Part shown: positions 26,031-50,620 of the stretch, piece by piece
Position numbering within the stretch: the stretch's first letter is position 1
Layout of the letters: each line of letters begins with the position of its first letter
IMG/VR virus record: IMGVR_UViG_3300009158_000031
Coordinates: 190,394 to 254,393 of that record
Length of the DNA: 64,000 bases
Reading direction: 5' to 3' (one strand)
Notes under the pieces: generated by a model
Told to the model about the DNA's origin: nothing
What the model saw: only the letters and a program-made list of their open reading frames with translations
Database searches by the model: none
Program-made: the position numbers and the translations under genes

Positions 26031-26583
26031 CATGTGCTCCTCGTAATCCATGTCTTGTCCGCGTTAACGTCCCGTGGAAGTCCAGTCCTGGCTAGGGCCC
26101 ATGAAATTCCGGACATTTTTGACCCTCGAAACTTTGGGCCGGAAATAAGGCGACGCACATCCCACTCTATACGGAAAGCCCTTTCTGGTAACGCGAGTAA
26201 GAGAAGCCCAAAGGCCTTTTTAAAAAAATTTTCCAGACTATATAGGATCTCTCGAAACTCATTGACTAATATATAGAGTAGCCGGTGAGTCTTTTTAAAC
26301 CTTTCTGACTCTTTGTTTTGCTCGAAGGAGAAGGTACTGACAGAGTGAAGACGGCTACTTTGTTTACAGTAATCTGTTAATAGTAAACTCTTACCCGACG
26401 CAAACGACGAGGGGCCATCCAGACTTCTCTGATGGTTTATTTCGCATCCCTCTTTTATACTCTCGGTATAAATTCGAGACCTCGATTGAACTGCCGATAC
26501 CGCGACTCGCATCTGATAACCACGATAAATAAACCATATACTCGATCTTACCGGCGAATCGTGTAAGTCATATAAAAACTAAT

Positions 26584-27016: not shown

Positions 27017-27394
27017 ATGAAATCAATACCTACATATCACGAATTCCTTAATGAGACCGTCTCATTTAATACCGATACTACTGGTCGTGAAGATTGGGAT
27101 GATGATCTAAAGAAACATTCTAGAGATTTTACTCAATCTATAGTAATAATGAGTCCGATGGATTTCTTGAAGAGAGTTCAATATCACCGATTTGAGATTA
27201 ATAAATCTAAAGTGGCTAATTATGTTAAAGAATTTCGTGGTAATGTCAAAGGAATTCCAGCACCAACCATGTGGTTCTCTGATAAGTTTCAATACGATAA
27301 AGGACTTGCTCCTGCTTTTCATGATGGATCTCATCGCATGCTAGCTCTACAAGAAGTAGGGATACGAGAAGTTCCGGTTAAAATTATATACTAA
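27017..27394 (+). CDS. ParB/Srx-like protein with capsid-targeting-like N-terminus
   Basis: MKSIPTYHEFLNE; DGSHRMLAL...VPV. Confidence 0.65.
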   Translation: MKSIPTYHEFLNETVSFNTDTTGREDWDDDLKKHSRDFTQSIVIMSPMDFLKRVQYHRFEINKSKVANYVKEFRGNVKGIPAPTMWFSDKFQYDKGLAPAFHDGSHRMLALQEVGIREVPVKIIY

Positions 27395-27395
27395 G

Positions 27396-28016
27396 ATGAA
27401 AAACATTCAAACATACGAAAGCTTCTTAAATGAACTTCGACATTCAAAAGAGTTTTTAATAGACCTATTTTCTAAAATGGATATTTTAGATAATGATGTA
27501 TACAAAAACATTTTAATCCATTACATTGAACAACCACAAAATTTAGAAAAACAAGAGTTCATTGATTTAGTTTCATGGTTGATCCAGAATAAAAACAAGT
27601 ACAGTGAAGTACTAAAGCCTAAAAATGGATATGCATACAGAGGAACTTCAATAACTCCTGATATGTTTCATAAATTAAAAAATGGATTATCAAAAAAAGA
27701 AGGTGGTATAAGCATATTTAACTTTCCTTATACCAGCGAATCAGAAGCACAAAGTTGGACATATGATTATAAAGTAGCAATGAGGTTTGCGGATAAAGGT
27801 CTTTTAAATAACCCTAGATTAGAAAAAGGAGCTAGACCAGCTATTTTAAGAGCTAAGATAGATGATACATTTGTAGGTAATCCTAAGTTGACTGGTCCCA
27901 TAGCTGACCGATTAAGTCTGAAGTCCGAAAAGGAAATATTTCATTTAGGGAATTCTATAAAAGATGCTGAATGGATGATATTCTCAGCCGATATAGAATT
28001 AGGAAAATTTAATTAG
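27396..28016 (+). CDS. ADP-ribosyltransferase-fold protein with capsid-targeting-like N-terminus
   Basis: MKNIQTYESFLNE; YRG, QSWT...A..FA, EKE (R-S-E triad). Confidence 0.6.
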   Translation: MKNIQTYESFLNELRHSKEFLIDLFSKMDILDNDVYKNILIHYIEQPQNLEKQEFIDLVSWLIQNKNKYSEVLKPKNGYAYRGTSITPDMFHKLKNGLSKKEGGISIFNFPYTSESEAQSWTYDYKVAMRFADKGLLNNPRLEKGARPAILRAKIDDTFVGNPKLTGPIADRLSLKSEKEIFHLGNSIKDAEWMIFSADIELGKFN

Positions 28017-28026
28017 TATAAAGACT

Positions 28027-28425
28027 ATGAAATCAATATCGACATATGATGAATTCTTAAATGAGTCTATTCGTGCAGAAGAGGCTTATCGAGATACAGG
28101 AGCTATTCAAACCGTCATTGATGGAAAGAGAGATATGGGATTCATTACCATCAAATCATCGGTTGATGTGAGCGAAAAAGAATTCTGGACATTGGTGAAG
28201 ATACACGATCTGAGTACCATTCACCTATCTGGAAATGAATATGATGCCTATATCTATTATCATAAAGGAGCCGAGCGAGGTGCCAGAGAGCTAGCGAAGA
28301 TTGCTAACAAATACGGTGGATATCTATCACATGAAGCGACTGAACGAGAATCTCGTCGAATAGGCGAACTTCTAGGTTACGATCGACGAGACATAGATGA
28401 TTATATAAAGAAAAACTACAAATAA
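28027..28425 (+). CDS. hypothetical protein with capsid-targeting-like N-terminus
   Basis: MKSISTYDEFLNE; IGELLGY. Confidence 0.65.
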   Translation: MKSISTYDEFLNESIRAEEAYRDTGAIQTVIDGKRDMGFITIKSSVDVSEKEFWTLVKIHDLSTIHLSGNEYDAYIYYHKGAERGARELAKIANKYGGYLSHEATERESRRIGELLGYDRRDIDDYIKKNYK

Positions 28426-28580
28426 TGGATAATGGAAAACGTAATCAATTAAAACCTGTGAGAATCGCTGATGTTAATAAGTTGGTGGCTAATGATCCGA
28501 GGATTCTTATTAAAGTTAATCATAAAGGTGGAAGTGGAGTTTCTCTTATGAACACTAATAAAATTAAAGACCGAAAATAA
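28425..28580 (+). CDS. small basic protein (51 aa, missing from ORF track)
   Basis: TAATG coupling; fills the gap to 28583. Confidence 0.5.
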   Translation: MDNGKRNQLKPVRIADVNKLVANDPRILIKVNHKGGSGVSLMNTNKIKDRK

Positions 28581-28582
28581 GA

Positions 28583-29287
28583 ATGAGAAAGATAGCCTTA
28601 TATGAGCAATGGATAAATGAAATTGGTGATTCATCAGCCAAGCCATTCAAATGGAGTAGTCCTGTTATCGCTGTTAATATGAAGAGATGGATAGATGATT
28701 GTATCGAAGGAGCTGCAGACAAGAAGATGAGTGGAACTCAAGAAGATATTTACTATAAAACTAAAACATTTAGATATGAATTCCGATCGGATGTGACTAA
28801 TACAAATTATCATGTACACATCGGTGGATTTGTTGGTAGAAATATCTGGATTGCCTTTCAAGGAGAAAAACCTAAAGATTGGGTTGGATATCATATAATT
28901 GCCGGATTAGGATTTGGTGTTGAAGGAGATTTCGATAAAACTACTAATCTTAATGAACAATTCCGAGTAATGGCAACCGTTACCGAATGTGCCATTGATT
29001 TTCTACAACGATTCTTGGATGATGGACGAATCAAGATTGATAAATTTCACATGAAACCTAAGGCCGATCACGAAGAACAAAAAGGAATAGATTCTCGTCG
29101 AGCTAAACTATATGCCCCTTATATTAAAGCCGCATTCCGCAAACTCAAAACGAAGAAGGATTATTACATAGATCAAGAGGCAGATGGATTCGTTCTTCAT
29201 TTCGGAAAGGTCATAATGAACTCTCCTTATTCCACTTCAGTATTAGCATCAACCTTTGAAAATGAAGAATCCAATGAAATCAATTAA
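28583..29287 (+). CDS. hypothetical protein with capsid-targeting-like N-terminus
   Basis: MRKIALYEQWINE; RRAKLY. Confidence 0.65.
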   Translation: MRKIALYEQWINEIGDSSAKPFKWSSPVIAVNMKRWIDDCIEGAADKKMSGTQEDIYYKTKTFRYEFRSDVTNTNYHVHIGGFVGRNIWIAFQGEKPKDWVGYHIIAGLGFGVEGDFDKTTNLNEQFRVMATVTECAIDFLQRFLDDGRIKIDKFHMKPKADHEEQKGIDSRRAKLYAPYIKAAFRKLKTKKDYYIDQEADGFVLHFGKVIMNSPYSTSVLASTFENEESNEIN

Positions 29288-30344
29288 GCTATATGAAGCC
29301 TTCTTAACAGAAGGAGGCTGGGCAACAACCAAAACACAAGGAACCGTTCTGACTCCAGCTGTTATCGCTGAGGTTGTGAAGGTTATGGATCTGATCAATA
29401 CGGGATTCAATGGACATTTGAGAGAGCTTGAACTTCCCACTCTAGATATTCTAAAACCTATTGGCAGTGGAACTTGGTGGAGTGAAGATGTGACCGAACA
29501 ACCAGACAAAACTTATGGAGATGTCGATTACATGGTTGCCTATCCCACTTTGAAGCTCACTGCTGGTCGTGATAGAGAAGATGAGATTGCTACGGTGAAG
29601 CTATACAATACCGAGCTGCTCATGTGGTTAGAGGAAGAAGGTATCACCGATGTAGATATTGATGAGACGAAGAAAATATCTTCGGATGTTTCTCTTAAGT
29701 TAATTGCGATCGTTCCCTTTAATGGAACTGATGCATATGTTCAGGTTGATATGGTTGTTACTCACAAAGAGTATAGTGATTGGGCAGTATTCCGTATGAC
29801 TCCTATTCGTAACGTTAAAGGTTTTGTGCTAGGAAATCTCTACTCTTCATTTGGTGAAGTTCTAGATTTGTCTATTCAGGCAAGAGGAGTAAGAGCTAAA
29901 TTTGAAGGTCAGGTTATGAAGCCTTATTCTAAACGAGCTAATGTTGAGGATCGCATCATCTCACAAAATGCTGAATCATTCATGACCGATATCGCTCGTT
30001 TCTTTTGGGAACAGAGCGGAACAGATATTCCATTCACCGCTACTCCTATCGAATCTTGGAAGGGAATGGATCGCAACTCTCCTCGATTCGAAGATCTAGC
30101 CGAAGGAATTCGTCTGGTTGCCGAGACACTAGGTCAGCTAGACGAATTTGGAACTACTATTAAATACAAATCAGCTGCTGATCTACTAAATGCAGTGATT
30201 GCTCAATATACGAAGAAGATGATGGAAGCTTATAATTCTGCTAAATTTGATAAGGCAGAAACTCCAGCAGCAAAAGCCATTATCACTAAAGTTAGAGCAA
30301 CCATTGACGAATATATCAGTCTGGCTAAATCACTACTTACATAA
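29274..30344 (+). CDS. nucleotidyltransferase-like protein with capsid-targeting-like N-terminus
   Basis: MKSIKLYEAFLTEGG; IGS...GDVD...VQVD Pol-beta-type motifs. Confidence 0.6.
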   Translation: MKSIKLYEAFLTEGGWATTKTQGTVLTPAVIAEVVKVMDLINTGFNGHLRELELPTLDILKPIGSGTWWSEDVTEQPDKTYGDVDYMVAYPTLKLTAGRDREDEIATVKLYNTELLMWLEEEGITDVDIDETKKISSDVSLKLIAIVPFNGTDAYVQVDMVVTHKEYSDWAVFRMTPIRNVKGFVLGNLYSSFGEVLDLSIQARGVRAKFEGQVMKPYSKRANVEDRIISQNAESFMTDIARFFWEQSGTDIPFTATPIESWKGMDRNSPRFEDLAEGIRLVAETLGQLDEFGTTIKYKSAADLLNAVIAQYTKKMMEAYNSAKFDKAETPAAKAIITKVRATIDEYISLAKSLLT

Positions 30345-30351
30345 AAGTAAT

Positions 30352-30726
30352 ATGTTATACTATTCACCAAAAATTGCAGTCGGAGAATCGACTGTAGCAG
30401 GCAGAGGTGTATTTGCCATAGCCGATATAGAGGCTGGAGAGGTACTTGAAGAGTGCCACTTCTTTTTACTAACTAATGGTAATCATTCAGCTATGGATGA
30501 TACTTTAAAAGAGATGGTATTCGCATGGCCGGCATATAATGATGTTCATCAATTTGCTGTTGTACTAGGCAGTGGAACTGTTTATAATCATTCATATGAA
30601 AACAATGCAACCTGGGATACTGATGAAGCTAAATGCTGTTTCAGATTTTCTTCTACTCGAGACATAAAGGCCGGTGAAGAGATATTCACAAATTATAACC
30701 GAAGCGGAGGAAATCACTTTGATTGA
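30352..30726 (+). CDS. SET-domain methyltransferase
   Basis: GRGVFA..DI.AGE, YNHS, RDIKAGEEIFTNY. Confidence 0.9.
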   Translation: MLYYSPKIAVGESTVAGRGVFAIADIEAGEVLEECHFFLLTNGNHSAMDDTLKEMVFAWPAYNDVHQFAVVLGSGTVYNHSYENNATWDTDEAKCCFRFSSTRDIKAGEEIFTNYNRSGGNHFD

Positions 30727-30752
30727 TAAATATAAAAACACACAAAAGCTAA

Positions 30753-31670
30753 ATGGCTAATTCAACATACACAGATCTTCAAGTTCTTATTCAACGAATA
30801 AGAGGTAAGCGAGTTCTTCTTCTTACAACATCTAATAGATGGAGTGGTGATGAAGGAGGAAAACCTAAATCTACTCAATTGGCTGAGTTAATAGCCAGAT
30901 CTTTATACGACGATTCAACGGATTCTACTCTTTGTAAAGTAATAGATATTCCATCTCTCAATATTCACAACTGTGAAGGTAATGTATCTTCCGGAAGTGG
31001 TAATGGTTGTGGAGTTAAGGCTGCTGCCCTAAAGGATACCACTAAAAATCCTACTGGTAATCTTCGTTGTTGGGCTTCTATTAATAATGCCGATGATGAG
31101 TTATGGAAAGTTAGTAATGCTATATTCGAATCAGATGTAGTCCTCTTCTTTGCTTCTACAAGATGGGGTCAGGCAAATGCATTCTATCAAAAACTTATCG
31201 AACGTCTAACTTGGTTAGAGAATCGTCACACTACTCTTGGTGAATCTAATCTACTAGGAAATATTGAAGCTGGTGGATTCTTCATTGGACACAATTGGAA
31301 TGTAGAAGATGTAATGAATACTCAAAGAACGGTACTTCAGTATTTCGGATTTCAAGTTCCACCTCAACTTTTTCTTCACTGGCAATGGACTAATAGTGAT
31401 ACTAACGAAACTCAGAAAGGATATGAAGCTGATGCTAAAGACTTCAAAGAGGTTTGGAAAGTTGGAACATATCCTTTAGAGGAAAGTTTTAATCGTTGGT
31501 TGAATGAAGCTGGTTATGATGCTGGTTCTAGAAAACCTACTCCGGAAGAGGTTGAAATGTGCAAATCTCCAGAAGGATTTAATCAGATAAACCACTGCAA
31601 AGCTTTAGGACTTACTCCTCGTGAAGATGGAACCAAAGCCAAATCTAAAAAATATGGTGGTGACGCATAA
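30753..31670 (+). CDS. flavodoxin/NADPH-dependent FMN reductase-like protein with extra C-terminal module
   Basis: CEGNVS, RCWAS, SDVVLF..TRWGQ; internal SFNRWLNE. Confidence 0.7.
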   Translation: MANSTYTDLQVLIQRIRGKRVLLLTTSNRWSGDEGGKPKSTQLAELIARSLYDDSTDSTLCKVIDIPSLNIHNCEGNVSSGSGNGCGVKAAALKDTTKNPTGNLRCWASINNADDELWKVSNAIFESDVVLFFASTRWGQANAFYQKLIERLTWLENRHTTLGESNLLGNIEAGGFFIGHNWNVEDVMNTQRTVLQYFGFQVPPQLFLHWQWTNSDTNETQKGYEADAKDFKEVWKVGTYPLEESFNRWLNEAGYDAGSRKPTPEEVEMCKSPEGFNQINHCKALGLTPREDGTKAKSKKYGGDA

Positions 31671-32452
31671 TGAAACCGATAAAACTTTTTGAAGATTTTA
31701 TTAATGAATTCGATACAGGTAAAGTATTACTAGGTGATCCTTCTTTATTGGGTAGACCTAATAAATGGGAAGATCTCGGAATAGAGTTTGAACCTAATAC
31801 TGCTGACAAAACTCAATTAATACAATTGATAAAAGATTGGATTTTTAAAGTAAAGGCAGATCCAAAGATGGGACATATCCTTAAAGAATTGCTGCCCTTA
31901 AAAAAGAAGTTTCCGAAAATATTAGAACCATCTGAAGGTAGATCCGTCTATGAAGGTACTTCTCTTTATAGAGGAACTATAATACCATTTAAAGAAGTGT
32001 TATCACTAAAGGGTAAATGGAAACGTAACGACGCGGTTGATATTTTTGGTGGTAGCCTAAATCTCAGTACATCATATAATTGGGAAAGTATTAATAGAAA
32101 GGGATTCACTTCGTTTACACCATCTATCGAAATAGCGGCCACTTTTGCAGGAAGCCTTAGTTCAGAAAATTATAACGAAATTGTAGCATCTAAAACGGTT
32201 GTTAAAAGATTATTAGATGGATCCATTGATGGTATGATTCCGATGATTATTAAAATTAAAGACACACATCCCTTAGCAATTATGAATCCGGTGTTTACTC
32301 AATCAATTCACGAATTCATGAATGAATTTGAGGTATTTGTTGTTGGAAATAAAATCCGGGTTGATGAAGTTATAATTCCAGGATGGCATTACTACGAAAG
32401 AGATGCTAAAGAATTAGGAGTAGATCTTACAAAATATTTTAACATACAATGA
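31670..32452 (+). CDS. ADP-ribosyltransferase-fold protein with capsid-targeting-like N-terminus
   Basis: MKPIKLFEDFINE; LYRG, FTSFT...A..FA, EFEV. Confidence 0.6.
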   Translation: MKPIKLFEDFINEFDTGKVLLGDPSLLGRPNKWEDLGIEFEPNTADKTQLIQLIKDWIFKVKADPKMGHILKELLPLKKKFPKILEPSEGRSVYEGTSLYRGTIIPFKEVLSLKGKWKRNDAVDIFGGSLNLSTSYNWESINRKGFTSFTPSIEIAATFAGSLSSENYNEIVASKTVVKRLLDGSIDGMIPMIIKIKDTHPLAIMNPVFTQSIHEFMNEFEVFVVGNKIRVDEVIIPGWHYYERDAKELGVDLTKYFNIQ

Positions 32453-33057
32453 AACATATCCAAGGTTTTAATACATTCCTTAATGAAGGCGAAGGTTTAT
32501 TTGCTGATGCCGGTAAAGGATCTACTAAAGGAATTGGATATGGAACGCCAGAAAAAGCTAAAGAGACTATTAAGATCGCTGACAAAATGAAGGCAGACGA
32601 TCCAGGAAAAGCCGTTCAAATCGTTAATGCCATGCTCAATCGAGCTAAATACTCAAATGGTCAGAATGATGGCATGAGAGCAGCAATTCCCATCTTTCAA
32701 AAATGGTTAAAGGCCAATCAAGCATCTGAATCATTTTTAGGAGTTGATGAATTCATTCTAGAAAAACTTTGGCAAAAGGAAGTAGAATCTTCTCACCTTA
32801 ACGAAATTGAATATGACTCATCAACTGAAGAACTAACTATTACTTTTAACAATGGAGACCGCTACAGATATTATGAAGTTCCTAAATCCATCTTCCGAGA
32901 ATTTGCCAATGAGAAAACTATTCTAGGAAAGATTGGTGGAGGAATTGTCAAAGGAGCCAAGAAGCTATTTGGTAAGGATATTGACGAAGGTACATATGGT
33001 AAAAAATTCTGGTCACTCATTCGTCGAGGTGGCTATCAATACGAAAAACTCTCATGA
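32449..33057 (+). CDS. KTSC-domain protein with capsid-targeting-like N-terminus
   Basis: MKHIQGFNTFLNE; VESSHL..IEYD....L.I.FNNG..Y.Y.EVP. Confidence 0.75.
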   Translation: MKHIQGFNTFLNEGEGLFADAGKGSTKGIGYGTPEKAKETIKIADKMKADDPGKAVQIVNAMLNRAKYSNGQNDGMRAAIPIFQKWLKANQASESFLGVDEFILEKLWQKEVESSHLNEIEYDSSTEELTITFNNGDRYRYYEVPKSIFREFANEKTILGKIGGGIVKGAKKLFGKDIDEGTYGKKFWSLIRRGGYQYEKLS

Positions 33058-33719
33058 AAGAAATAAAATTATATGAGCAATGGCTCAATGAAATCGATGG
33101 TCCTGCAGATGGATCTCTATTCGGTACATCCGGAGTAGATTTTGGATTCATCGGTCTGCAAGATCCAGGAGACACACCAAATTCGTTTGAACCTAATATG
33201 GTTGAATCCTTTATTATTGATCTTCTTCAAAGACACAATAATACCGTTCCTTCTCCTGGCACACTTACCGTCGAGTATCTTGAAGATATCGAAAAGGTAC
33301 AAACCGGAATGAGTGATAAAGATCGATCATTTGTTCAGGCAGTTAATAATAATCCTATGGCTTTTCATGTTGAAGATGCCAAGAAAGCTGGTATTGATCT
33401 AGATGGTAAATGGTTAACTGAATGTTGGGATTATGCTACCAGTGTAGCAGGTACTGCAAAAGATATTTGGAAAGTAAAACGTCCATTTGAATTAAGCTCA
33501 AAAGTCAAGGGGTTGGTTCCTACTAAATCCTTCTCATTTCCTTCAACTAATGCGGCCGGATCTTTTTATGTAGCAAAAAAGGTTGCAGAGAAATATCCTC
33601 AATTGAAAGAATCTCAAATGGAAGTGGCTACTCAAATAGCAAATTCACGAGTTGTTGCCGGTGTGCATCATCCATTAGATATTGCCGTTGGAAAAATGTT
33701 AGCCTTAGGCTTATTATAA
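33054..33719 (+). CDS. PAP2/acid-phosphatase-fold protein with capsid-targeting-like N-terminus
   Basis: MKEIKLYEQWLNE; K-x6-RP, SFPSTN, SRVVAGVHHPLD. Confidence 0.75.
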   Translation: MKEIKLYEQWLNEIDGPADGSLFGTSGVDFGFIGLQDPGDTPNSFEPNMVESFIIDLLQRHNNTVPSPGTLTVEYLEDIEKVQTGMSDKDRSFVQAVNNNPMAFHVEDAKKAGIDLDGKWLTECWDYATSVAGTAKDIWKVKRPFELSSKVKGLVPTKSFSFPSTNAAGSFYVAKKVAEKYPQLKESQMEVATQIANSRVVAGVHHPLDIAVGKMLALGLL

Positions 33720-34273
33720 TGTTCAAGAAATTTAGACAATTCATTAATGAAGATATTCATATACCTTCCGGTAAATGGATAGACACTGACCTTAAAGGTC
33801 AGGATGATGATATGATGCAACTCATATGGACAATGTATACTGACACATACTCTAAACAAGGATTAGATTTCTCTGCCGATGATTATGCTGAACTTAAAAC
33901 TAAATACCAAGCAACATTCTTAAAGGATGTTGACCATGATCGTATTCCAGATGCCTTTATTATATACAAGAAAACGAAGTATGGAAATAAGATTGCTCTT
34001 CTAGGAACTAATGATAAGAAGACTGCAAAACGAGATCTTCTAGAAAAAACTATTTCATTACTTAAAAATCCTGGTTGGTTGTTAGAGGCCTCTCGTAAAA
34101 TGGAAGAGATTCTTTCAAATTCAAATGTTCCTTATATTGAAGATCCTGAAATCATTGCTGATATTGTCGGTAAAGACAAGAAACCTGAAATGGTTAAACA
34201 TGGATATTATACAAGACTTCTTTCAAAAACACCAAAGCGTATCTTAAAACGCATGTATGGTAAGGTCAAATAG
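33719..34273 (+). CDS. hypothetical protein with capsid-targeting-like N-terminus
   Basis: MFKKFRQFINE. Confidence 0.65.
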   Translation: MFKKFRQFINEDIHIPSGKWIDTDLKGQDDDMMQLIWTMYTDTYSKQGLDFSADDYAELKTKYQATFLKDVDHDRIPDAFIIYKKTKYGNKIALLGTNDKKTAKRDLLEKTISLLKNPGWLLEASRKMEEILSNSNVPYIEDPEIIADIVGKDKKPEMVKHGYYTRLLSKTPKRILKRMYGKVK

Positions 34274-34357: not shown

Positions 34358-37300
34358 ATGAGAAACAAACATATGAAAAATCCTATTTTAATTTGCCTGT
34401 TACTATTTAATTTAATTGTAATTGGACAAACAACACCTAAAGAAAGATACATAAACAATTCTGATTATCTTTCTAAAAACTCCTTAGTCGATTACAAAAG
34501 CTATTACGGAGATTCCATACAAGGATTCGACGAAGCAGCTATGAAAGTTGAACTACTAAGACGAAACGTTTTTGGTTCAGAATACATCAACTACATTGCT
34601 CTTGTAAAAAGAGAATGGGTAAATCAAAAGTACGGTATCAAACCTGTACTACCTATCAATTCAAACAACCGACCTATTGGAGGTCCTAACTCAGTTAATT
34701 CACCTGGTAATGCTTGTGTGAATGAAGACTTTGAGCTTACTGCACCTGGAGCTTATAATGGAATGAATTCTGTTTTAGGATGGACAATTCAAAGTGGACA
34801 AAATACTTCCAATATCTGTTGTGGAAATCCTACATATGGTGCTGGCTGTGTTGCTAATCCTATTGCTAATTGGAATGCAGGTAGTCCTGAATTTTCTATT
34901 GTTGCTACTCCAATACTACCTGCTCCTAGTTGTGCTAATCCTCCTGGATTTAGTATTGACAATGTATCAATACCTAATTCACCTCTTGGCGGTAACCGAG
35001 TTGCAAGACTACAAAACTCATGTCCAACCGGTTTGATGACTCGAATTATGACACAATTTCCTGTTTCAAATTCTAATACCTTATTTCAATTTTGTTATGC
35101 TGGTTCATGGGATGGTGTTCATGAATGTTGTGGACAACCTGCTTTTAGAATCGATATGTATAATTGTACAGGTTCATTAATCCCAATACCATGTGCCAAT
35201 GTAAGCCTAACTCCTTCCGGACAATCTTGTCAAAGTGGAGTTCCTGGATATCAGGTAACCAGTGGAGTTTCATGGGTTAATTGGCAAACAAAATATATTG
35301 ACTTAACTCCTTATATTGGTCAGTGTATTAGAATTGTGGTAACTTGCTCAGATTGTTCTTATTCTGGACATCATGGAACTGCTTATTTTGATGCAAGATG
35401 CGGTGGTCAATTAGTTGGAGTTGGATTAGGTGGAGTTGGTGGAAACATTGCAGGACCTGTTAGTTATTGTGCTGGTTCAAATCAAGCTATTATTGCCGCA
35501 CCATTGGGATACTCGTCATATCAATGGATATCTCCTATCACAGGAACAATTCCTGCTAATGCAGGAGGTACAGCTCCAGTATTAACCATAAGTCCAGTAG
35601 TTGCAGGTTTAGTGTATACAGTTCAGTTAAACTCACCATCAGGGTGTTCTTATATTGCAACCAATACAATCATGCCTACTCTTGTAAACATTGCAGGTAT
35701 TGGTTCAGGCACAAGTTGTGCAGGAGGATCAAGTGGAACGGGTACTGTTCAAGGTAATGGCAGTGGCACAGGATACAATTATACTTGGGTAAATTCAAAT
35801 AATGCTGTAGTTGGTACCTCAGCAACAGTAAGTGGACTGCTTCCAGGAACATATAGCGTAACTATAACTGGTCTTGGCGCTGCAGGATGTGGTTCAGCAA
35901 CATCAACTATATCAATAGGAGTTGGAATACCTCAAATGCAAAATCTATTAAAACCGTATTGTGGTTCTCAAGCCTATTTAAGTGTAACGGGTAATAGTGT
36001 TCAGTGGTCTACCAACAATACAGCTATCTCCGCTCCATTAGGAGTGGCAATGGGATACACAGTAAACAATCCAGTACAGGCTTCAGTATACACAGTTACC
36101 TATACTTCATTACAAAATTGTAATGAAGCAGCTTCATTCACCCTAATACCATCTCCGCCGGGCAGTATATCATTACTAACTACTTCTGTTTGTTTAAACT
36201 CGACAAATGGCAGTGGAACTATTAATCTAACTCCTGCATCTGGTTCTCCTCCTGGAGCTAATTCATATTCAGTATGGAATTCTAATAATACTCCGGTTTA
36301 CAATTCATCATTGTCTCCTACTAATCAAAATAATTATTTGTTTGGAAACATGGGAACCGGTAGTTATCAAGTAAGAGTATTTGATGGTTCCTGTGCATAC
36401 ACAACTTCCTTTATTATACCTACTCATGTATTTTCTCCTACATTAAGTCCAACCTCAACAACTCTATGTCCTGGTGGAGGTATTGCAGCCGGAGTAGTAT
36501 TTAGTATTCCACCATCATTATCTCAATACACTTACTCTTGGACACCTAATATCTTTTTAGCAGGAAACACTCAACAATCAACGATTATCATACCAAATCT
36601 TGCAGTAGGTACGCAATCAAATATAACTTACTCAGTTGTAATTACTCCTACTGCTATTAATTGTCCGATGACTCGTACATTAAATTTATGGGCAATCAAT
36701 CCACCAATTCCAACTATTACTGCAATACCTAATATGTGTAACAATATGCTTCCATATCAAGTATTGGCTAATCCCAGTGGTGGTATCTTTACCGGAGTTG
36801 GAATGAGTACATTAGGTTTAATCTCTCCGACTGCTTCACTATTAGGAATCAATAACTTTACATATGCCATTTCAATTAGTACTTGCGCATCATCTAATAC
36901 TGGAAGTTATCAGGTATCATATTTCAATACTTCATCATTAAGCTCTTCAATAAATCCTATATGTTCTACTAATTCAACAATAAATCTTATGACTATTGTT
37001 CAGAATACCTTAGGATCTTGGTCAGGTAATTATATAACGAATAACATATTCAATCCAGCAAATCTAAATGGAGTATACTCATTAACCTACAATAATTTAT
37101 CAACACCAAATCCTACAGTATGTCCTTCATCTACTCAAATGAATATATCGGTTACTAATACAATAATTCCGACTATTGCAAATTCCAATCCATTCTGTAC
37201 GAATGCCTCCTCTTTTGTATTGATCGCTAATCCAAATGGAGGAATCTGGTCTAACAATTCTGCAGTGAGCGGTTTAGGTATTGTAACTCCTTCATTGACA

Positions 37301-39325
37301 TCTCCTACAAATACAACGGTTAATTATGTCGTTAATGTTGGTCCATGTATAAACACAAACACATTCAACATATATCCATCAACTTTCAATACGGCTTCTT
37401 TAACTGGATCTATCCCTAATTTATGCGTAACGAGCTCATCAATAAATCTAATGTCAATCGTACAAAATACGACTGGATCTTGGTCAGGAATGAATGTTAC
37501 TCAAAACATATTCAACCCTTCAGGATTACCGACCGGAAATTATACTTTAACATACAATACCAACTCGGCTCCTAATGTTACTCTATGTCCAGATAACCGA
37601 ACAATAAACATATCGGTTCTTAATCCGGCATCTCCGAACATTACTACATTCGGACCTATATGTAGCAAAGATGCTATTATGCAAATGACCGTTACTCCTA
37701 ATTCTGGTAGTTGGATTTCTACTCCATATCTAAACATTAATGGAATATTAAATCCTTCGCTATGTCCTATTGGAATTAATGCCATTCAATATGTAATAGG
37801 AACTAATACTTGTTCGGCTCAACAAACAAAAACCTTTGTGGTTGAGATGTTCATTCCATCAACGATAACAAATCAAATACCTGACTTGTGTAATACCAGC
37901 TCTCCCATAAATCTTAATTCATATTCTGGTTTTCCTGGATCTTGGTCAGGATTAGGAATCAATGGTTCAATGTTTACTCCATCGAATTCAGGAACATTAA
38001 TTCTAGTACATACCACATCATCATCTAGTGGTTTATGTCCTAGTACGTCAAGCATATCAGTTAGAGTATATTCATTACAATCTCCAGTAATAATCAAGCC
38101 AAATTCTGTATGTAACACATATGCGCCTTTCCAATTACAAGTAAATCCAATCGGTGGTATATTCGGAGGTAATGGATCTAATACTAACGGAATTTTTAAT
38201 CCAGCATATGGAGCGATAGGAAACAATATAATTAATTACAGCATTTCTGCCGGTCCTTGTATAGCATATGCACAGACTACTGTTAATATTGAGAAATTTA
38301 TATCGGCTGATCTAGATCGATACCCTAAAACCGTTTATTGTAAAGGTACTGAATATCCTTTTAATCTGAATTCGTTAGTCAAAAATCCAAATTATAATTG
38401 GTCTGGTCCTGGAGTAAATGGTTATATGTTCGATCCACAAATGGCAAACATCGGAAACAACCTAATATATTATCGAACGCATTCTGCACCAACGGCTTCA
38501 TTATGTCCGGATGAAAAATCATTTAACATAAGGGTTGCTCAAATAAGTAAACCCATCATATCGCTATCTGATTCAATTGGTTGTGTTCCTCTTAGAGTAA
38601 TTCTCAATTCAAACGAAAATACTGGATTATCTTCTTGGAAATTTAGTAATGGATATTCTAGTGAAGCCAATTCTCTTGCATATACATTTACTTCAAGCGG
38701 AATACATTCAATAATATTCTCATATATCAATGATGAAGGTTGTGTATCGCCAAATCAAATGATTACTCTTATTAGAGTTGATGAGGTACCTTTTCCCAAG
38801 TTTCAATTACCAAAATCCATTTATGCAGGAGATTCAGAAATCCAAGCAATAAATCTAACTCCTAATGTAGGAAGTTACACTTACACATGGATGGTATCTA
38901 ATGGATATTCAGTAAACACAATTAATCTTGCATACGATCCCAAGAAAATAGGCAAGTACGAAATAACATTAATTGCAAAGACGGTTAATGGATGCACGGC
39001 ATCTACTAGAAAAATGATAGAGATACAAAACGAATTTGAAGTACATATCCCAAATACTTTCACTCCTAATAGAGATGGTCTCAACGATTATTTTCTTCCA
39101 GTATTTTCTGACTATGGAGTTGAGTTATCTTTTTATACACTAGAGATTTTCGATCGATGGGATCACTTAATTTATAGATCAATCGATCCTAAAAAAGGAT
39201 GGGATGGAAAAGCCAAAAATGAATTATGTCAACAAGGATCCTATGTATACAGACTTAAGTTTTCTGATAAAGAGAAGAATGTGTATGAGAAGATTGGACA
39301 TGTTCTCCTTTTAGGATCCGATTAA
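34358..39325 (+). CDS. large secreted adhesin-like protein with PKD-like repeats and T9SS type-B (gliding-motility/CHU_C) C-terminal domain
   Basis: Signal peptide then Gln; Cys/Ser/Thr/Asn-rich repeats; IPNTFTPNRDGLND...IFDRW...GWDG...GSYVY. Confidence 0.9.
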   Translation: MRNKHMKNPILICLLLFNLIVIGQTTPKERYINNSDYLSKNSLVDYKSYYGDSIQGFDEAAMKVELLRRNVFGSEYINYIALVKREWVNQKYGIKPVLPINSNNRPIGGPNSVNSPGNACVNEDFELTAPGAYNGMNSVLGWTIQSGQNTSNICCGNPTYGAGCVANPIANWNAGSPEFSIVATPILPAPSCANPPGFSIDNVSIPNSPLGGNRVARLQNSCPTGLMTRIMTQFPVSNSNTLFQFCYAGSWDGVHECCGQPAFRIDMYNCTGSLIPIPCANVSLTPSGQSCQSGVPGYQVTSGVSWVNWQTKYIDLTPYIGQCIRIVVTCSDCSYSGHHGTAYFDARCGGQLVGVGLGGVGGNIAGPVSYCAGSNQAIIAAPLGYSSYQWISPITGTIPANAGGTAPVLTISPVVAGLVYTVQLNSPSGCSYIATNTIMPTLVNIAGIGSGTSCAGGSSGTGTVQGNGSGTGYNYTWVNSNNAVVGTSATVSGLLPGTYSVTITGLGAAGCGSATSTISIGVGIPQMQNLLKPYCGSQAYLSVTGNSVQWSTNNTAISAPLGVAMGYTVNNPVQASVYTVTYTSLQNCNEAASFTLIPSPPGSISLLTTSVCLNSTNGSGTINLTPASGSPPGANSYSVWNSNNTPVYNSSLSPTNQNNYLFGNMGTGSYQVRVFDGSCAYTTSFIIPTHVFSPTLSPTSTTLCPGGGIAAGVVFSIPPSLSQYTYSWTPNIFLAGNTQQSTIIIPNLAVGTQSNITYSVVITPTAINCPMTRTLNLWAINPPIPTITAIPNMCNNMLPYQVLANPSGGIFTGVGMSTLGLISPTASLLGINNFTYAISISTCASSNTGSYQVSYFNTSSLSSSINPICSTNSTINLMTIVQNTLGSWSGNYITNNIFNPANLNGVYSLTYNNLSTPNPTVCPSSTQMNISVTNTIIPTIANSNPFCTNASSFVLIANPNGGIWSNNSAVSGLGIVTPSLTSPTNTTVNYVVNVGPCINTNTFNIYPSTFNTASLTGSIPNLCVTSSSINLMSIVQNTTGSWSGMNVTQNIFNPSGLPTGNYTLTYNTNSAPNVTLCPDNRTINISVLNPASPNITTFGPICSKDAIMQMTVTPNSGSWISTPYLNINGILNPSLCPIGINAIQYVIGTNTCSAQQTKTFVVEMFIPSTITNQIPDLCNTSSPINLNSYSGFPGSWSGLGINGSMFTPSNSGTLILVHTTSSSSGLCPSTSSISVRVYSLQSPVIIKPNSVCNTYAPFQLQVNPIGGIFGGNGSNTNGIFNPAYGAIGNNIINYSISAGPCIAYAQTTVNIEKFISADLDRYPKTVYCKGTEYPFNLNSLVKNPNYNWSGPGVNGYMFDPQMANIGNNLIYYRTHSAPTASLCPDEKSFNIRVAQISKPIISLSDSIGCVPLRVILNSNENTGLSSWKFSNGYSSEANSLAYTFTSSGIHSIIFSYINDEGCVSPNQMITLIRVDEVPFPKFQLPKSIYAGDSEIQAINLTPNVGSYTYTWMVSNGYSVNTINLAYDPKKIGKYEITLIAKTVNGCTASTRKMIEIQNEFEVHIPNTFTPNRDGLNDYFLPVFSDYGVELSFYTLEIFDRWDHLIYRSIDPKKGWDGKAKNELCQQGSYVYRLKFSDKEKNVYEKIGHVLLLGSD

Positions 39326-50128: not shown

Positions 50129-50208
50129 GCCCTTATGGTGGAATTGGTAGACATGCCAGACTTAGGATCTGGTGCTTAGGCGTGTAGGTTCGAGTCCTAC
50201 TAAGGGTA
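50129..50208 (+). tRNA. tRNA-Leu(TAG)
   Basis: GCCCTTA/TAAGGGT acceptor, CCAGA-CTTAGGA-TCTGG, variable arm, GTTCGAGTC; CCA not encoded. Confidence 0.95.
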
Positions 50209-50548: not shown

Positions 50549-50620
50549 TGCGGGATAGAGCAGTGGTAGCTCGGCGGGCTCATAACCCGTAGGTCGCAGG
50601 TTCGAATCCTGCTCCCGCTA
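50549..50620 (+). tRNA. initiator tRNA-fMet(CAT)
   Basis: 1:72 mismatch, GGG/CCC in anticodon stem, CTCATAA loop, GTTCGAATC. Confidence 0.93.

Follow-up and report, generated by a model that had tools for sequence, protein, structure and literature searches.

A putative T4-type capsid-targeting leader shared by unrelated genes of an uncultured, distantly T4-like phage

The internal head proteins of bacteriophage T4 all enter the core through a capsid-targeting sequence (CTS) of 10-20 residues. The prohead protease gp21 strips the CTS from the internal proteins (IPs) and from Alt, and cleaves after the Glu of an I/L-x-E motif (PMC12991175). Across the T-even phages, the internal proteins form a diverse set whose sole common feature is the CTS (reviewed in PMC3012670). 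In the T4 genome (NC_000866), ipII and ipIII start with MKTYQEFIAE-A, which confirms for these two proteins the sequence that a first-pass annotation of the DNA described here gave for T4, and ipI starts with MKTFKEFTST. Here we analyse the final 64 kb of IMG/VR contig 3300009158_000031 (254,393 bp), the whole of which we call the window, where nine plus-strand genes between positions 27017 and 34273 share a short N-terminal pattern, the tag. We consider it probable, from sequence comparison, that this shared N-terminus is a T4-type capsid-targeting leader for head packaging.

Like the T4 CTS, the tag is a short N-terminal leader on otherwise unrelated proteins, has a similar sequence and ends in I/L-x-E. 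It is likewise found in a genome that encodes a gp21-family S77 protease, a T4-type portal and a gp23-type capsid protein, and has an ADP-ribosyltransferase (ART)-like protein among its putative cargo, as T4 has Alt. It differs in being 13 rather than 10 residues long, with a three-residue x-I-x insert after MK, and in occurring on at least 25 genes rather than a handful, their products being mostly enzymes of 120-500 amino acids (aa). Further differences from T4 are a protease that appears fused to the scaffold, fusion proteins in which tag-like copies lie internally, and the phage itself, which is only distantly T4-like, has a Bacteroidota host and offers a system known so far from sequence alone. 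The T-even internal-protein loci (PMC3012670) provide the closest genomic parallel, being clusters of unrelated genes that share the leader only and vary in content between relatives. In the same way, a related contig (L007) carries five tagged genes, among them homologues of cargoes 6, 8 and 9 of our array and a ParB-like protein, so that it shares four of the cargo families in a different order. Unlike those loci, the present system is larger, with at least three arrays of 5-10 genes, bears clear enzymatic domains and belongs to an uncultured jumbo/mega phage clade.

Two other described systems are comparable in part. The propeptides of the ejection and inner-body proteins of phiKZ, SPN3US and 201phi2-1 are also found on head-internal proteins of giant phages, are removed at x-x-E motifs by a related prohead protease and are thought to target the protein to the prohead; however, they are mostly 80-160 residues long, have no common short tag and are cut at S/A/G-x-E. 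The polyvalent and MuF-fused effectors (Iyer et al., 2017, PMC5512222) and the Dar proteins of phage P1 resemble our case in the virion delivery of ART, ParB/Srx-like and other conflict domains; in injected polyvalent proteins, ParB/Srx and the ART, to which the packaged Alt of T4 belongs, both act as hub domains. In these effectors, however, the domains are fused covalently to a head protein or to each other, whereas here they are encoded by separate small genes with a portable leader.

Eight of the nine genes, with starts between 27017 and 33054, open with M-[KR]-x-I-x-x-[YF]-x-x-[FW]-[IL]-x-E (consensus MK-xIx-[TL][YF]xxF[IL]NE), and the nine tag-bearing ATG codons lie at 27017, 27396, 28027, 28583, 29274, 31670, 32449, 33054 and 33719, all on the plus strand. 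The leader of the ninth gene, MFKKFRQFINE, is a shortened or decayed copy, and its homologue on the related contig (L007:10780) has a full-form tag, MKHVKLFEDFMNE. All nine leaders end in I/L-x-E (LNE in five, INE in three and LTE in one). In a six-frame translation of the window, the strict pattern M[KR].I..[YF]..[FW][IL].E has exactly eight matches, every one of them the first Met of an open reading frame (ORF) of 125-356 aa inside 27017-33054, and its DNA form, observed eight times, is expected 0.01 times from 100 dinucleotide-preserving shuffles. The nine N-termini quoted in the first-pass annotation are all present and, as it states, the tag opens no further gene of the window by the six-frame scan; genome-wide the array is not unique, with two more arrays upstream of the window on the same contig. 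Because synonymous codons vary among the copies (ATA/ATT/ATC, CTT/TTA/CTC/ATA/ATT and TAT/TAC/TTT at conserved positions) and the DNA upstream of them is unconserved, the tag is conserved as protein and not as a DNA repeat.

The same sequence is also represented by contigs of 207 kb and 122 kb, and by walking the 207-kb JGI copy in 10-kb steps we extended the survey to 152 kb of the genome, with about 223 plus-strand genes. Within this survey at least 25 ORFs, about one in nine, start with the tag or a close variant, and once the tag is removed no two of 25 tagged proteins show BLASTP similarity at E ≤ 1e-3. Ten of them form an array (array A) of consecutive genes directly after the terminase, sheath and tube genes, with leaders including MKNYINTFEGFLNE, which occurs twice, and MKHILTFKNFLNE; two one-residue variants are adjacent, and the array A proteins have no match in Pfam. 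Four more lie just upstream of the window, with the leaders MFKKFFQFISE, MKPIKNYNEFINE, MLKFNQFVNLILNE and MLKYNQFVQWLNE, while a tagged ATP-grasp enzyme (RimK, 2e-34) and a tagged 132-aa protein are located near head and replication genes, and the remaining nine of the 25 make up the window array. Genes for replication and nucleotide metabolism, including topoisomerase, clamp loader, exonuclease, thymidylate synthase and RNA ligase, are untagged.

A gp21-like protease, which the first-pass annotation had suggested looking for, is encoded in the same genome between a T4-type portal gene and a gp23-type capsid gene. The structural genes fall into two blocks, one with a gp17-like large terminase (phmmer, 4e-53) and a gp18-like sheath and the other, about 25 kb further upstream, with, in this order, a gp2-like protein, a portal (Portal_T4, 5e-71), a Peptidase_S77 protein (6.3e-13) and a capsid protein (Gp23, 4e-36). 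The S77 protein (L224:3037-4938) has 633 aa and scores 49 bits against a Pfam cut-off of 27; its residues 1-170 align with T4 gp21 (BLASTP 6e-12, 34% identity), and T4 H85 and S140, the residues mutated to inactivate gp21 (PMC12991175), are matched in this alignment by the His of ELDHP and by the first Ser of ISSRAAG, so that the catalytic His and Ser are kept. Its C-terminal 450 aa are coiled-coil-like and contain 23 I/L-x-E sites, and by position and composition this extension looks like a fused scaffold. At residue 494 it also contains an internal tag-like MHFFNFLAE-SK, ahead of the last 140 residues, with the counterparts FFKFINE-SK and FFQFLGE-AK in relatives. The capsid protein starts with MYLINE-SE, and those of relatives with MNLINE-AE, MYLLNE-QE and MIKLINE-AE; the 860-aa Lys/Glu/Ala-rich protein encoded after the capsid gene (L224:7419-10001) has ...EEYQFLINE as its exact C-terminal end.

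The boundary between leader and cargo can be followed in the families of cargoes 5 and 6. For cargo 5 there are at least 199 homologues, with identities of 50-98%, and in the 120 that we read the leader varies in both length and sequence, with forms such as MINLKTYDQFLFE, MRNLPTYENWTALNE, MYIKLFEQWLAE and MKSFQEFINENYTLNE, and always ends in a Glu that is followed by an invariant GGW; this Glu is also invariant in the 42 homologues that we aligned. Among the 37 homologues of cargo 6, the majority open with the tag and continue at once with a conserved FE[YT]G. Six homologues are longer, with some 120 additional residues behind the tag and ahead of the conserved domain; in at least one of them this stretch contains a second, internal tag-like YTFESFLNE, giving the order tag, domain, internal tag, ART. 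This layout is as expected for a fusion of two tagged genes and would yield a polyprotein cleavable at each tag.

Outside this genome, a degenerate DNA pattern of the tag matches at least 120 stretches of IMG/VR at least 158 times. Of the 158 matches listed, 145 are followed by an ORF of at least 60 aa, and 133 of these 145 have at most 25 open codons upstream; a control with the same codon set in scrambled order matched 27 stretches, once each. The profile of the tag across the genome and related phages, proposed as a check in the first-pass annotation, thus gives at least 25 unrelated tagged genes in the one and matches almost all at ORF starts in the other. One contig of 34 kb has eight tagged genes within 7 kb. 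Structural genes in tag-bearing loci are T4-like by phmmer (gp17, gp18, gp20, gp21 and gp23), and in one locus (L074) the order is portal, a 113-aa gene starting with MKIIKTFEEF, protease-scaffold, capsid protein and three tagged genes. Querying with the protease-scaffold yielded 254 relatives; of the 80 best loci, about 20 encode between portal and protease a protein of about 110 aa that starts with the tag (e.g., MKIIKTFEDFIAE and MKYLRLFEQFIKE), at the position that the core proteins gp67 and gp68 occupy in T4; the best 80 of the 254 did not include the contig studied here. Leaders of T4 length also occur in relatives, as MKTFNDFINE in L074, MKSFQEFINE in cargo-5 homologues and MKTFTYFINE in the cultured phage MA9V-2. 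Searching by tblastn with the 20-aa tag and with a 112-aa portal-proximal tagged gene returned nothing, as these queries are too short or too diverged, and the motif strings of the tag have no match in the searchable literature.

A Pfam survey of 46 further tagged IMG/VR proteins identified at least four members of the ATP-grasp family, two cytidylyltransferase-like proteins, two DUF5824 proteins and one each of a leucine-rich repeat (LRR) protein, a phage lysozyme, a CHAP protein and a Tad3 homologue. In a further tagged cytidylyltransferase (L112:7470-8039, CTP_transf_like), the Pfam domain begins at residue 21, right behind the leader. The Tad3 homologue (L067:4389-5156, on the 248-kb contig 3300032307_000764) has the leader MKRIKDFKGFINE, and its residues 49-170 match Tad3 in Pfam at 4.5e-21. 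Tad3 is an inhibitor of type I Thoeris that binds and blocks the ThsB sensor; if the tag loads cargo, a known counter-defence protein would here be pre-loaded in the head.

Two phages show leaders of other forms. MA9V-2 (OR513085, 218 kb; L254/L255), a cultured Chryseobacterium phage of which we scanned 117 of the 218 kb, has T4-length tags, with tag-related positions at 162897, 166687, 170857, 216401 and 217850. Its leaders are MKNFFSFINE, MKTFFTFVNE and MKNFFQFINE, together with the above MKTFTYFINE on an 82-aa protein whose gene lies between those for portal and protease. Close to its N-terminus, the capsid protein of this phage has the sequence ...DRWSEFINE-AAPKGG. This phage offers a ready experimental system. 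In LR745208, a GC-rich, uncultured phage of 485 kb, a homologue of cargo 9 (L010:8448-8897) and an unrelated protein (L010:13911-14618) share another leader, M(V)TLRSKL[VI]RLAH.NP.LR..LLPLLKE-A, which is about 30 residues long and also ends in L-x-E. In this separate lineage of huge phages, the cargo family may be loaded by means of a tag of another kind.

Within 27017-34273 there are 12 ORFs, three of them without an N-terminal tag; the genes of the window are nearly all on the plus strand and tightly packed, at about 33% G+C. Tagged gene 1 (27017..27394, 125 aa, leader MKSIPTYHEFLNE) may encode a ParB/Srx-like protein, with a language-model lead from the ESM Atlas, in which ParB_N makes up 63% of the third-ranking cluster (score 0.94, 178 shared features), and with no match in Pfam. 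Cargo 2 (27396..28016, 206 aa, leader MKNIQTYESFLNE) is a possible ART, again from language-model leads (the DRAT, ADPrib_exo_Tox, Mod_ADP_RT and NarE clusters of the Atlas, at 0.82-0.91) and with no Pfam match. Cargo 3 (28027..28425, 132 aa, leader MKSISTYDEFLNE) is weakly similar to the NleE methyltransferase effector, at a Pfam E-value of 7e-5 and 22.9 bits, under the 27-bit cut-off. Cargo 4 (28583..29287, 234 aa, leader MRKIALYEQWINE) belongs to a virus-only family whose closest Atlas clusters contain viral hypothetical proteins, some of them DUF6934.

Tagged gene 5 (29274..30344, 356 aa, leader MKSIKLYEAFLTE) starts at the ATG at 29274 and not at the TTG at 29256 that opens the ORF upstream. 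Its product has, as judged from motif and model, a nucleotidyltransferase fold of the Pol-beta superfamily: E13-G14-G15, G64-S65-G66 and D83/D85 are invariant in the alignment of 42 homologues, the last two forming a GSG...DxD motif, and the predicted AlphaFold2 (AF2) structure has a mean pLDDT of 89, with residues 1-16 of the leader below 50, and matches family X polymerases (Pol beta, lambda and mu) in Foldseek with a probability of 1.00 and E = 1e-5. The same fold is also joined to a ParB/Srx domain in a phage protein of 1096 aa (E = 1e-22). Cargo 6 (31670..32452, 260 aa, leader MKPIKLFEDFINE) is predicted to be an R-S-ExE ART-like protein, with R101 (YRGT), S148 (FTSF) and E219/E221 (EYEVF) invariant in 24 homologues. 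Its AF2 model has a pLDDT of 75, and the top three fold matches in the Protein Data Bank (PDB) are the Vis ART toxin, at a weak E = 0.05 and template modelling (TM) scores of 0.26-0.30; it has no match in Pfam or among PDB sequences, and the family profiles of cargoes 5 and 6 returned noise only against PDB sequences.

The last three tagged genes follow directly. Cargo 7 (32449..33057, 202 aa, leader MKHIQGFNTFLNE) has a KTSC domain at residues 113-155 (Pfam 1.6e-13, 50.6 bits against a cut-off of 25), and cargo 8 (33054..33719, 221 aa, leader MKEIKLYEQWLNE) a PAP2-family phosphatase domain (Pfam 1.7e-7, 31.5 bits against 27.2), with a tagged PAP2 homologue at L007:11735. Cargo 9 (33719..34273, 184 aa) has distant homologues in the huge phages LR745208 and LR756501. 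A PHROGs search of the array proteins was uninformative, and tblastn of cargoes 5 and 8 against phages returned nothing. Among the cargo assignments of the first-pass annotation, KTSC and PAP2 stand on Pfam matches, the nucleotidyltransferase on fold and motif and one of two ARTs on its signature, while the second ART and the ParB/Srx-like protein are weaker leads.

The reading that we favour, packaging into the head, draws on the statistics of the tag, its modularity, its likeness to T4, the I/L-x-E end, the protease, the Glu at the junction, the head-gene context, the fusions and the kind of cargo, which includes the tagged lysozyme and Tad3 of related contigs. The leader of about 13 residues, short and probably amphipathic, would bind the scaffolding core during prohead assembly, so that any protein bearing it would be enclosed in the head; the gp21-family (Peptidase_S77) protease would then cut after the final Glu of I/L-x-E, and the mature cargo, freed inside the capsid, would be ejected with the DNA into the next host, to act at the very start of infection, probably in host takeover or counter-defence. 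We infer each of core binding, cleavage, presence in the virion, injection and the roles of the cargo in the host. The payload may serve against host defences, as suggested by analogy with T4 IPI and Alt and by the one tagged Tad3 homologue.

Several points weigh against packaging. The capsid proteins of the nearest cultured phages are 28-34% identical, the MA9V-2 paper includes no virion proteomics, and there is no tag-bearing phage with a published virion proteome. Around the head genes of Tenacibaculum phage PTm1, which has the same type of protease-scaffold, no tag is visible, so that it cannot be obligatory across the wider clade; in addition, some homologues of cargo 6 start otherwise (MIKLKNILREF). 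The residues that follow the presumed cut are mixed (T, L, S, I, G, F, G, I, D), the helix modelled for the leader by AF2 is short and of low confidence, and at least 25 cargo species are far above the number in T4. An untagged SET-domain gene and a 51-aa ORF interrupt the array. Finally, with a ClpP-like enzyme also encoded by the phage, the leader could be read by a protease other than the gp21-like one.

This last point leads to one of the two rival explanations that survive best, both of which we regard as improbable. According to it, the leader is an N-terminal degron, or an inhibitory propeptide for another protease such as a ClpP-like one, that times the destruction or activation of potentially toxic enzymes. 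A phage protein of the ClpP family is encoded at 930-1457 of the window (175 aa, Pfam 5.9e-20), among metabolic genes and far from the head module; the ART, nucleotidyltransferase and PAP2 cargoes could harm the cell that produces them, and the leader is predicted to be disordered. Degrons of the ClpXP type, however, are not known to need a conserved Glu at a fixed boundary, whereas our leader ends in a gp21-type I/L-x-E and resembles the T4 CTS, and the placement of the tag on the small protein between portal and protease in relatives, as well as of arrays next to structural genes, also speaks against a degron.

In the other, which we hold to be no more probable, the leader directs proteins elsewhere, to the membrane, to a replication or assembly compartment, to a secretion route or to a common chaperone. 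The tag is hydrophobic at positions 4, 7, 10 and 11, a spacing that fits an amphipathic helix of the kind frequent in membrane- or partner-binding peptides, and tag-like motifs also occur internally and near C-termini. But the leader is charged (K2, E8 and E13) and has no hydrophobic core, signal-peptidase or lipobox features, the secreted-type protein of this phage uses a CHU_C domain of the type IX secretion system (T9SS) instead, and the invariant Glu at the junction and the likeness to T4 would go unexplained.

Less likely still, to the point of being very improbable, is that the shared start is a relic of common descent, kept by chance or gene conversion in tandem-duplicated paralogues. 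While the arrays are indeed tandem and neighbouring tags are sometimes near-identical, as with the repeated leader of array A, the 25 proteins have no similarity past the tag, the folds of the cargo differ (Pol-beta nucleotidyltransferase, ART, PAP2, KTSC and ATP-grasp), the tag is found on cellular families that normally lack it (e.g., CTP_transf_like), and the different codons of the copies argue against gene conversion. Least probable of all is a role of the conserved stretch in translation, as an initiation region or downstream box in the mRNA: all copies start with ATG-AAA/AGA and are A/T-rich, but synonymous codons vary while the amino acids, including the aromatics and the Glu, are kept through codon 13, upstream regions are unconserved, and tag-like peptides also occur internally. 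Each of the four leaves at least one of the T4 resemblance, the invariant boundary Glu and the unrelated folds unexplained.

The three ORFs of the array without an N-terminal tag are a 51-aa ORF (28425-28580), the SET-domain gene (30352-30726, plus strand, 124 aa, Pfam SET 2.6e-14), of the lysine methyltransferase type, which sits mid-array with the N-terminus MLYYSPK, and a gene for a WrbA/FMN-reductase-like flavodoxin (30753-31670, plus strand, 305 aa). In the flavodoxin, a tag-like ESFNRWLNE (31488-31514) is found 60 residues from the end and precedes a Cys-containing tail of 51 aa; neither this motif nor the SET gene is mentioned in the first-pass annotation. The flavodoxin family has 2624 matches, with members mostly of about 250 aa, and about half of those of this length that we read have an ES[FY]xx[WF] helix 2-9 residues from the C-terminus; ESFxxWLxE with a 55-aa Cys-containing tail is found only in the 10 closest homologues. 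The motif may represent the tag in a C-terminal or internal position, or may resemble it by chance. As a general device, a C-terminal tag was dropped, since of 2233 ORFs one has the core motif at its end, where 1.7 are expected, and the flavodoxin stands as an isolated oddity.

Just downstream of the array, at 34358-39325, lies the gene for a 1655-aa protein with a signal-like N-terminus, PKD and a CHU_C T9SS domain (4.7e-14), which indicates a Bacteroidota host. A second T9SS-tailed protein, a cohesin, is encoded at L221:18371-20263 of the same genome, and the phage apparently exports proteins through the T9SS of its host. The capsid protein is closest to that of the uncultured huge phage LR756500 (54% identity) and 28-40% identical to those of Tenacibaculum phages pT24 and PTm1, Sphingomonas phage PAU and Chryseobacterium phages MA9V-1 and MA9V-2, with Flavobacterium phage MaF61 and the Prevotella Lak megaphages in the same range. 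A nucleotide search of the array against GenBank phages gave no match. Flavobacterium phage immuto was rejected as a relative, as a search of the first 25 kb gave nothing in common with it but a thymidylate synthase gene, and immuto has a family A polymerase.

Upstream of the array, the 1.4 kb between 25563 and 27016 have no credible ORF and a G+C content of about 0.40, against 0.33; at 26279-26357 on the plus strand they match the CyVA-1 RNA family with 37.3 bits (E = 2.5e-6), under the Rfam gathering score of 41.4. Elsewhere in the window there are a tRNA-Leu at 50129 and a tRNA-Met at 50549, and genes for SmpB, a TROVE (Ro60-like) protein and a nucleotidyltransferase of the poly(A)-polymerase type are found side by side at 57-70 kb of the 207-kb contig (L220/L223). 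The T4 late promoter motif, TATAAATA, is not enriched (5 matches against 12 expected) and gives no indication of the timing of expression.

That head-internal proteins share a removable targeting leader is a principle already known and textbook for T4 and the T-evens. New here are the tag length of 13 residues, its use on at least 25 genes, its copies inside fusion proteins and a cargo that is clearly enzymatic, as well as the lineage, that of an uncultured jumbo phage which infects Bacteroidota and has LR756500 and the Lak/PAU/PTm1 group as relatives. A broader proposal, to which we give somewhat less than even credence, is that the tag is a portable loading code of a large clade of uncultured Bacteroidota jumbo/mega phages that acts independently of position, as a removable leader, as a processing site between the domains of fusion proteins or, in the flavodoxin-like family, near the C-terminus. 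If so, the tag would serve primarily as a helix for binding and only secondarily for cleavage, a step further than the T4 system is known to go, and the injected proteome, tens of proteins per phage with enzymes and counter-defence factors such as Tad3 among them, would be readable from sequence.

Proteins that are co-injected with the DNA act ahead of phage gene expression and are for this reason prime candidates for counter-defence and takeover, and their identification normally depends on virion proteomics with cultured phages. With a sequence tag, metagenomes would suffice for listing the injected proteome of uncultured giant phages, and new anti-defence proteins could be singled out, as the tagged Tad3 homologue illustrates; such a tag would also offer a means of loading foreign proteins into Bacteroidota phage heads, as the CTS does for T4. 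If the leader does direct packaging, the loading mechanism of T4 would extend far more widely than the T-evens and would be scalable to about one gene in nine.

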